Made by a program: the position numbers and the translations under genes | Assembly (NCBI GenBank): GCA_002189035.1 | Contig: NEEC01000014.1 | Coordinates: 992,001-1,056,000 of the forward strand | Source: Utricularia gibba | Taxonomy: Eukaryota; Plantae; Magnoliophyta | Reading direction: 5' to 3' | Length of the DNA: 64,000 nt | Shown here: positions 50,928-52,692 of the stretch, one piece after another | How the letters are laid out: the number at the start of each line of letters is the position of its first letter | How positions within the stretch are numbered: position 1 is the first letter of the stretch | Notes under the pieces: model-generated | What the model saw: the letters and a program-made list of their open reading frames with translations, nothing else | Database searches by the model: none | What the model was told of the DNA's origin: nothing

Positions 50928-52692
50928 ATGGCCTGGCAGCACTGCTTTACCAAGTTGCTGTTCGCGGTTAACCATCTCTTGACCTTGATACTCTTTGTCT
51001 TCTTGGCGGTTTCGGCGTCTAGGATCAGGGATCCTTTATTTGCAGCTTATATAGTTTTCTGGGTTCTGGGGGTGCTGTCTGTTGTGGCTATCGTCCTGGT
51101 AGGGTGTGAAAAGCAGGAGCCGCAACCGCAGGTAAATGTGGTGTTTTTCATCTTCTTGCTCCGCTTGTTTGAGGGTGTAAATTGGTTTTAAGAGTGGATG
51201 CTAATGCAGGAAGATGAGGTGAAAAACGCATCGCGTGTACCGGATTCTGAATCCGGGGATTATCTGGGTTTGGAGTTTGATTTTCGTAAAATCGAGGCAT
51301 CCACGGGCAATTTCTCTGTTGAGAACAAGCTTGGTCATGGTGGATACGGTGTTGTTTACAGGGTAATTCGCTTAGCTTCTCGTGAGTACTATTCTGCTTT
51401 TTGAACCTTCCCTGTAATTAATACTGGTTGGTGGAAACGAAACTGCTCCAGGGGAAGCTTGAAAGCGGCCAAGAAGTAGCGGTGAAGATGCTCTCTGTAG
51501 GTGCATCACAAGGCGACAAGGAATTCAAGAATGAAGCAACGCTTGTAGCTAAACTTCAGCACAGAAATTTAGTGACCCTCTTTGGATTTGCGATCCATGG
51601 AACTACCAGGCTTCTCATATATCCATATTTCATGAGGACGAGCTTGGACCGCTTCATCTTTGGTACCATTTCCTGTACTCCCTCTTTTCTTTGTGATCCC
51701 GGGAAGCTAACATGGACATGGACATCTGGTTTCAGATCCAGTTAAACGATTAGAGATGAACTGGGACACGAGGTTCAAGATCATCAAGGGCATTGCCAAG
51801 GGACTCATGTACCTACATGAGGATTCACCTCTACGCATCATCCACCGAGATCTCAAAGCAAGCAATGTATTGCTAGATGATGAATGGAATCCCAAGATCG
51901 CCGACTTCGGCATCGCCAGACTTTTCGAGTTCGACGAAACTCATGCTGAGACAAATAAAGTAGTCGGAACATTGTAAGCTTTCCCTTTTAACTTGTGTAC
52001 TAGAGGTAGCTCTGAGCTTTTAGGAAGATGATATCAATCATTAACATCCTAACAGGGGATATATCGCTCCGGAGGCATGCTGCGGAGAGATTTCATCTAA
52101 ACTAGACGTGTTTAGCTTCGGAGTGTTGGTCCTGGAGATCGTTAGCGGACAGAAGACGGCCTCCTGCATCAGTGGCGGCATGCTGAGCTTCGTAAGTGTT
52201 GCAAGATTACTGTGCTTTGTCAGTTTTCTTTCCCTAGTCTTCAAGTGACGATGATGATGATGATGATGACAACAGGTCTGGAGCAGATGGCAAGAGGGAT
52301 CACCCCAAAGCGCGATAGATCCCATGCTCAGAGCTGATTCAGAATCACTACCAGGGATCTTGAAGTGCATTCACATCGCGCTACTGTGCGCACAAACGAA
52401 TCCAGCAGACAGACCCACAATGGCATCTATTGTGTTCATCCTCAGCAACCCATCCATCTCCCTCCCCCCTCCTTCAGAACCTCCATTTTTAGTGTCGTCC
52501 ACACGATCAATGGAGCTCCAGCGATCCACGGAGGCTACCGAACTCCGGGAAATCATCATTTCCACAACCAATTCAACCAAATCCAGCTCAACGGACCTCA
52601 ACGCATCGTACGAGACCTACTCCAGCCGAACCACAGACGGGAGATCACCGCCCATGGCATTTCCTCCCACGCCCCATGGTTCCACAGTGTAG
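50928..52692 (+). CDS. CRK-type RD receptor kinase lacking a DUF26 ectodomain: two adjacent hydrophobic segments then kinase; predicted 452 aa, 6 exons
   Basis: Exons 50928-51131, 51210-51362, 51452-51662, 51736-51973, 52056-52191 and 52276-52692 splice in frame (GT-AG). Motifs [48 protein letters not shown] and ADRPTMAS are present. There is an in-frame stop upstream at 50832-50834. Confidence 0.88.

Follow-up and report, generated by a model that had tools for sequence, protein, structure and literature searches.

The usual CRK gene is made up of seven exons, one encoding DUF26, one the transmembrane (TM) segment and five the kinase domain (PMC6368629). CRK derivatives that have no ectodomain, referred to as CRCKs, arose at least three times; one CRCK clade, CRCK-I, which consists of the orthologues of AtCRK43, is single copy across angiosperms, in a conserved syntenic block and with a dN/dS of 0.134 (PMC6368629). 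The Arabidopsis proteins CRK43, CRK44 and CRK45 have no signal peptide, ectodomain or TM segment (PMC4511522), which agrees with the statement in the original prediction that some CRKs of this plant lack ectodomains, and CRK45 (ARCK1) binds CRK36 (cited in PMC12040379). In addition, a few receptor-like cytoplasmic kinases (RLCKs) reportedly have a TM segment (PMC12170986, with reference to Shiu and Bleecker 2001).

DUF26-less proteins are also found among the annotated gene models of many angiosperms. In 32 of the 120 DUF26-less CRK-like models of up to 417 amino acids that were listed, a TM segment directly precedes the kinase domain. Examples of 300-417 amino acids that carry the name "CRK" are as follows:

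P0008, Quercus suber CRK10 isoform X2
P0005, Canavalia gladiata
P0071, Apium graveolens
P0014, Cichorium endivia

Several of the annotated models are isoforms or partial sequences. Of three loci inspected, the one from Apium graveolens (L001:7472-8194) has a DUF26 exon 1.8 kb upstream of the model start and the one from Cichorium endivia (L003:1005-1742) has such an exon 8.3 kb upstream, both on the same strand as the model; no upstream DUF26 exon was found at the Canavalia locus. The Apium and Cichorium models may represent truncated annotations or genes split by insertions.

The window analyzed here, a 64-kb stretch of the Utricularia gibba genome, contains a further gene of this general layout at positions 50928-52692 of the plus strand. 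With a probability of roughly 0.65, it is a transcribed and correctly spliced gene with its own promoter, coding for an RD-type Ser/Thr kinase of CRK descent that has lost DUF26 and is predicted to be a membrane-tethered, RLCK-like protein. Splicing of the window sequence yields six exons and an open frame of 1359 nt that encodes 452 amino acids, with GT..AG borders at all five introns and a first intron in phase 0. The clean six-exon frame with all catalytic motifs that had been read from the letters is thus recovered by both the splicing and the motif check, the peptide of exon 1 is identical to the one proposed earlier, and the upstream in-frame stop is there as well (TAG at 50832-50834, with no ATG between it and the start codon at 50928). 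The features of the gene are the following:

50547-50685, plus strand: putative core promoter, with G-boxes CACGTG at 50547 and 50615 and TATAAATA at 50678
50770-50927, plus strand: 5' UTR as far as the contigs reach, containing the in-frame stop and an upstream ORF (uORF)
50818-50862, plus strand: uORF of 14 codons, in a different frame from the main ORF and carried by the three longer contigs
50928-51131, plus strand: exon 1, 68 codons, with predicted helix 1 (residues 3-31, signal-like), the turn R-I-R-D, predicted helix 2 (residues 36-62, TM-like) and the acidic CEKQEPQPQ
51210-51362, plus strand: exon 2, juxtamembrane segment, LEFDF motif and G-loop GHGGYG
51452-51662, plus strand: exon 3, VAVK Lys, alpha-C Glu and hinge (Pfam PK_Tyr_Ser-Thr, 2.6e-09)
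51736-51973, plus strand: exon 4, HRDLKASN catalytic loop, DFG and activation loop (Pfam Pkinase, 3.7e-15)
52056-52191, plus strand: exon 5, GYIAPE and DVFSFG (Pfam kinase match, 1.4e-04)
52276-52692, plus strand: exon 6, C-lobe, 70-amino-acid Ser/Thr-rich tail and stop TAG
52693-52799, plus strand: 3' UTR as far as the contigs reach, containing the contig ends

Transcripts were sought in nine runs from three studies of one organism, the best four of which contain 0.71 of the sampled words, about the share of the exons, and contigs from four runs were aligned to positions 47500-53400. Spliced contigs from runs of all three studies were obtained as single pieces of 1603, 1566 and 1539 nt and as a pair of 510 and 1085 nt. 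They contain exon 1, for which a check by RNA-seq had been proposed, and carry all five junctions, four of them outright and the fifth in adjoining pieces (52193, then 52279) next to a GAT repeat. This (GAT)n microsatellite occupies positions 52246-52270, within intron 5, and is the reason why the fifth junction was passed over in the alignment. The contigs end at 52731-52799 and start at 50770, 50787, 50810 and 50856, that is, 72-158 nt 5' of the ATG and all within 90 nt of each other, positions that do not in themselves fix the transcription start. One contig (the one starting at 50856, from run X6) begins with 25 extra letters ending in GGG, which are absent from the 64-kb window even at up to four differences; these letters may come from a template-switch oligonucleotide, in which case position 50856 would be a capped 5' end. 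The putative core promoter lies 85-220 nt 5' of the longest contig start (50770), and its two G-boxes (CACGTG occurs 15 times in the whole 64 kb) together with TATAAATA suggest a promoter of the ABA/stress or light type.

In the contigs of the four runs, the depth is zero over positions 47500-50651, in the introns and 3' of 52819; the empty introns and upstream region mean that these runs represent spliced RNA rather than the locus in genomic DNA. None of the contigs is joined to an upstream exon, and about 3.3 kb 5' of the gene are without transcript cover. Since the contigs begin at 50770-50856 with nothing upstream of them, no DUF26 exon is spliced in. In the sampled runs, therefore, the gene is expressed and its transcripts contain no DUF26-coding exon, which leaves the original prediction standing on both counts.

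The CRK genes and gene remnants of the window lie at some distance from this gene:

about 9.8-7.4 kb, minus strand: intact double-DUF26 CRK
about 12.1-11.5 kb, minus strand: ectodomain remnant
26.2-28.7 kb, plus strand: intact double-DUF26 CRK
31.4-34.2 kb: kinase-less CRK copy and deletion-scarred fragments
35.4-37.8 kb, plus strand: intact double-DUF26 CRK

The CRK debris at 33058-34167, which follows the kinase-less copy, includes an ORF (33478-33771) in which a partial DUF26 is fused straight to a kinase exon-5 motif; this internal-deletion pseudogene illustrates domain loss within the CRK array. The array ends at about 38.5 kb and is followed by two minus-strand ORF groups that resemble a TPR protein and an R2R3-MYB, and then by the 452-amino-acid gene, which sits in a slot between the MYB gene and a MYND-finger gene. 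There is no C-X8-C-X2-C on the plus strand from 37 kb to the window end, and a tblastn search with the ectodomain of a cluster CRK detected no DUF26 remnant from 37 kb onward, which includes about 12 kb 5' of the gene. The claim that the product has no C-X8-C-X2-C motif is in line with both the motif scan and the tblastn search. The gene could in principle still be a full-length CRK with a far-upstream DUF26 exon that is joined in unsampled transcripts, as the upstream DUF26 exons at two of the three loci from other species illustrate and as the fact that truncated models can be artefacts would allow. However, the 12 kb upstream are free of plus-strand DUF26 coding and two unrelated minus-strand genes intervene; moreover, the four contigs, from three studies, begin within 90 nt, and an in-frame stop precedes the ATG, which makes a hidden exon extremely improbable.

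The kinase part of the spliced product has the complete motif set of an RD-type eukaryotic protein kinase (Pfam PF00069 / PF07714), i.e., the G-loop, the VAIK Lys, the alpha-C Glu, HRD..N, DFG and APE, and also contains the DRPTM motif. Its relatives were retrieved by profile searches that combined a database scaffold with the exons of the gene, leaving out exons 1, 2 and 5, which were misplaced in the alignment; the length window of these searches was set by the first row, and the lists consist mostly of relatives of the scaffold. The best relatives listed are eudicot double-DUF26 CRKs (50-63% identity), the nearest among the matches listed being variable-group CRK10/29-type kinases, and proteins named G-type lectin kinases show 43-45% identity to the 452-amino-acid kinase. 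Compared exon by exon, the CRKs of the window are 45-69% identical to the gene and have the same kinase exon borders; for residues 89-119 of the product, within exon 2, the identity is 45% and the match ends at a common exon border. A word search with exon 6 alone gave just two matches, both of them weak (48% and 47% identity). A quick maximum-likelihood tree of 63 kinase domains, built without a good outgroup and with a long branch for the gene, nests it within the CRK kinases (clade SH-aLRT 95-96), with the mutual placement of the gene and the window CRKs not settled, and gives a weak hint of asterid relatives. The identities and the tree position concur with the assignment to the CRK type in the original prediction and place the gene in the CRK kinase clade.

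Neither an orthologue nor a self-match was found in the profile-search lists. An exact look-up of seven ORFs of the window, including those of exon 1 and exon 6, returned none from the protein collection, which means that the proteins of this genome are probably unrepresented there and that missing relatives mean little. The annotated DUF26-less models come no closer than about 60% identity to the gene among those listed and are accordingly not its orthologues.

The absence of an orthologue among the matches listed, the long end branch (0.97) and the unusual substitutions would all be expected of a transcribed relic in decay, i.e., a truncated CRK copy without a function of its own, and CRK arrays do shed truncated copies, such as the kinase-less copy and fragment at 31.4-34.2 kb. 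The substitutions in question are a Pro in the hinge, where the 181 relatives have Glu, an R-to-M change adjoining the catalytic Lys and, in APEY, a missing Tyr; with these three changes, kinase activity is not assured. Nevertheless, the end branch of the gene is matched by a stem of 1.04 common to the three true CRKs of the window, and all four kinase domains of the window have about one change per column as against a median end branch of 0.08 in eudicot CRKs, which suggests that the long branches reflect a fast-evolving lineage and not the gene itself. In the 149 columns that are conserved in at least 90% of the 181 relatives, the gene departs from the consensus 26 times and the window CRKs 21-23 times, and none of the 26 departures affects the G-loop glycines, the VAVK Lys, the alpha-C Glu, HRD..N, DFG or the APE Glu. 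The gene shows no greater degeneration than do the true CRKs of the window.

Further points against decay come from the frame itself, which is open in the window and free of stops and indels in the transcripts of the three studies. Contigs of the two other studies differ from the window at 18 positions, 11 of them coding, and these comprise eight synonymous and three non-synonymous variants (pN/pS of about 0.11; binomial p = 0.0007 against the synonymous-site share); the two that fall in exon 1 are both synonymous. Albeit from small numbers and unidentified source plants, this speaks for constraint across the entire frame, exon 1 included. Given also the putative promoter region with its own TATA and G-boxes, a decaying relic is quite unlikely, and a functional, CRK-derived kinase gene remains the preferred reading.

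The membrane anchor of this kinase and its topology were judged from hydropathy, charge counts and a single-sequence AlphaFold2 model. Exon 1 has two hydropathy peaks, with 19-residue means of 2.54 and 2.86, and AlphaFold2 places helices at residues 3-31 and 36-62, separated by the four-residue turn R-I-R-D (mean pLDDT 80); the two approaches agree on the two-helix hydrophobic N-terminus that had been proposed. The charges around these helices are unusual. Counted over 12 residues, of which the first is the first charged one behind the TM, the stretch that follows helix 2 (51108-51143, residues 61-72) has a net charge of -4, whereas the same stretch carries 0 to +8 (median +3) in all 126 TM-bearing relatives checked and +2 to +5 in the window CRKs. 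The only membrane-proximal basic residues of the gene product are the two Arg in the inter-helix turn. Under the positive-inside rule, the acidic flank after the putative TM helix argues against a simple kinase-in topology, whether or not helix 1 would be cleaved. On the other hand, a hand count of the charge balance around helix 1 (Lys9 and the amino terminus versus R32, R34 and D35) slightly favours an N-in orientation, which would put the kinase in the cytosol.

Taken at face value, the two Arg of the turn and the flank of -4, the reverse of the basic stop-transfer cluster of all 126 relatives, would fit an Arg-rich turn that is cytosolic with the C-terminus outside, or a hydrophobic N-terminus that serves as a cleaved secretion signal only; the kinase would then not be cytosolic and there would be no kinase signalling. 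Such an arrangement is very unlikely: it runs counter to the slight N-in tendency of helix 1, it would be difficult to see why a full complement of kinase motifs should be under purifying selection in a place without ATP, and helical hairpins are readily induced by tight turns that are charged and contain Pro. A cytosolic kinase tethered by the two hydrophobic helices is therefore retained here as the working reading. It would allow two placements, either a helical hairpin with both termini inside (N-in/C-in) that bends at the tight RIRD turn, or cleavage of helix 1 as a signal peptide that leaves about five residues outside.

As for the origin of exon 1, BLAST alignments with full-length CRKs begin at residues 39-42 of the gene product, opposite the TM segment of these CRKs, and continue through the kinase domain, and the distance from the TM end to the G-loop is 49 amino acids as compared to a median of 43. 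At the level of these alignments, the predicted helix 2 lines up with the transmembrane segment of the CRKs. The gene consists of a TM-type first exon and five kinase exons with the borders seen in the window CRKs, and the DUF26 exon is absent. The original prediction had exon 1 recruited from elsewhere on the grounds that the intron behind it is in phase 0 and the post-TM intron of the cluster CRKs in phase 1. The phase difference itself holds for the cluster copy at 27 kb (the one copy read, by eye), where the intron differs from that of the gene in position as well. However, the juxtamembrane stretch in which the junction falls is variable and the junction is offset by about seven codons, so that the difference is explained equally well by a shift of the splice site, and the claim of recruitment was not upheld: with helix 2 collinear with the CRK TM segment and six exons equal to the seven of a CRK minus DUF26, loss of the DUF26 exon appears more fitting than a recruitment of exon 1 in its entirety.

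Recruitment of the whole exon from an unrelated gene or from non-coding DNA, in which case the anchor would be no CRK remnant, nevertheless has more in its favour than the intron phase. A search of 1.84 billion representative proteins yielded no genuine homologue of exon 1, exon 1 resembles neither the signal-peptide nor the TM exons of the window CRKs, be it as DNA or as protein, and the acidic flank is unlike that of all relatives checked. (The sole match to exon 1, P0001, was rejected as a chance alignment of RIRDPLFAA to a nine-fold ARLLDPLFAA repeat. A blastn comparison of the promoter and exon 1 with the window gave AT-rich noise only.) These points are offset by the position of helix 2, which is as far from the LxFDF motif and the G-loop as are CRK TM segments and through which the alignments pass, and by the exon count, which is that of a CRK without its DUF26 exon (PMC6368629). 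Besides, TM segments and signal peptides diverge fast, and at a kinase identity of about 55% to the neighbours no similarity would be expected anyway. All told, recruitment of the entire exon is unlikely.

The preferred course of events would start from a CRK of the ordinary make-up, in which a DUF26 exon and a TM exon precede five kinase exons. Of these, the DUF26 exon would have been lost, and the TM-type exon would have become the first exon, acquiring additional coding sequence at its 5' end (helix 1) together with a new start codon. Because helix 1 is without a detectable homologue, this deletion scenario cannot be shown for it; its source may be a diverged signal peptide, a former intron or other DNA. 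It is also conceivable, although decidedly doubtful, that helix 1 is newly evolved and forms with the old CRK TM segment a lineage-specific, charge-reversed hairpin (Arg-rich turn, acidic juxtamembrane stretch) that serves as a new membrane anchor or address, and that the protein may be the kinase half of a split receptor whose other half would be provided by DUF26 proteins without a kinase, for example the neighbour at 31.4 kb.

With regard to function, the two hydrophobic helices of a DUF26-less CRK would anchor the protein in the membrane with the kinase in the cytosol. Without a ligand-binding domain, it would most likely act like a membrane-tethered receptor-like cytoplasmic kinase that is phosphorylated by, or phosphorylates, ectodomain-bearing receptor kinases, as a possible parallel to Arabidopsis CRK36 and CRK45. 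By this analogy, the earlier description of the protein as ligand-blind and in need of a partner is plausible.

The gene is of interest as a natural and well-documented instance of a receptor kinase that has no sensor, is predicted to be still tied to the membrane and is under selection. It could be a handle on CRK kinase signalling without an ectodomain of its own, and the acidic flank after the TM segment provides an unusual natural test of topology rules. The novelty proposed in the original prediction is weakened. Transcripts and upstream sequence exclude a hidden DUF26 exon, the usual annotation artefact, which makes this gene a cleaner case than the annotated models; the layout as such was already known from CRCKs, TM-bearing RLCKs and many TM-plus-kinase models. 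Since CRK ectodomain loss and TM-bearing RLCKs have been described before, the knowledge of the family is unchanged. The one real oddity of the gene is the acidic stretch after the putative TM segment.

Compared to the known systems, the gene shares with the CRCKs a CRK-lineage kinase without DUF26 and, presumably, by analogy, the role of a partner of ectodomain-bearing kinases. Judged by description only, it differs from CRCKs, which are soluble and have no signal peptide, ectodomain or TM segment, in that two strongly hydrophobic helices are present, one of them the retained TM-like helix; an ectodomain is absent from both. The annotated TM-plus-kinase models have the same overall layout of a TM segment and a CRK kinase, but they show a single TM segment with a basic cluster behind it and lack the signal-like first helix. 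The canonical CRKs of the window have five kinase exons with equal borders and a similar rate of change; unlike the gene, they possess two DUF26 domains, a signal peptide and a Pro-rich linker, and their TM exon is separate, has a basic flank and is followed, in the copy read, by a phase-1 intron. The extracellular DUF26 with its C-X8-C-X2-C motif, which defines CRKs, is missing from the gene product, which by kinase descent and exon structure would nonetheless belong with the CRKs. The features of TM-bearing RLCKs, as they are cited, are all recognizable at the sequence level: a receptor-like kinase domain, no ectodomain and a putative TM anchor. These RLCKs are a general class and not a clade, and neither a two-helix anchor nor an acidic flank is known for them. 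The gene is probably best described as coding for a CRK-derived, ectodomain-less, membrane-anchored kinase, which would in effect be an RLCK with a TM segment.
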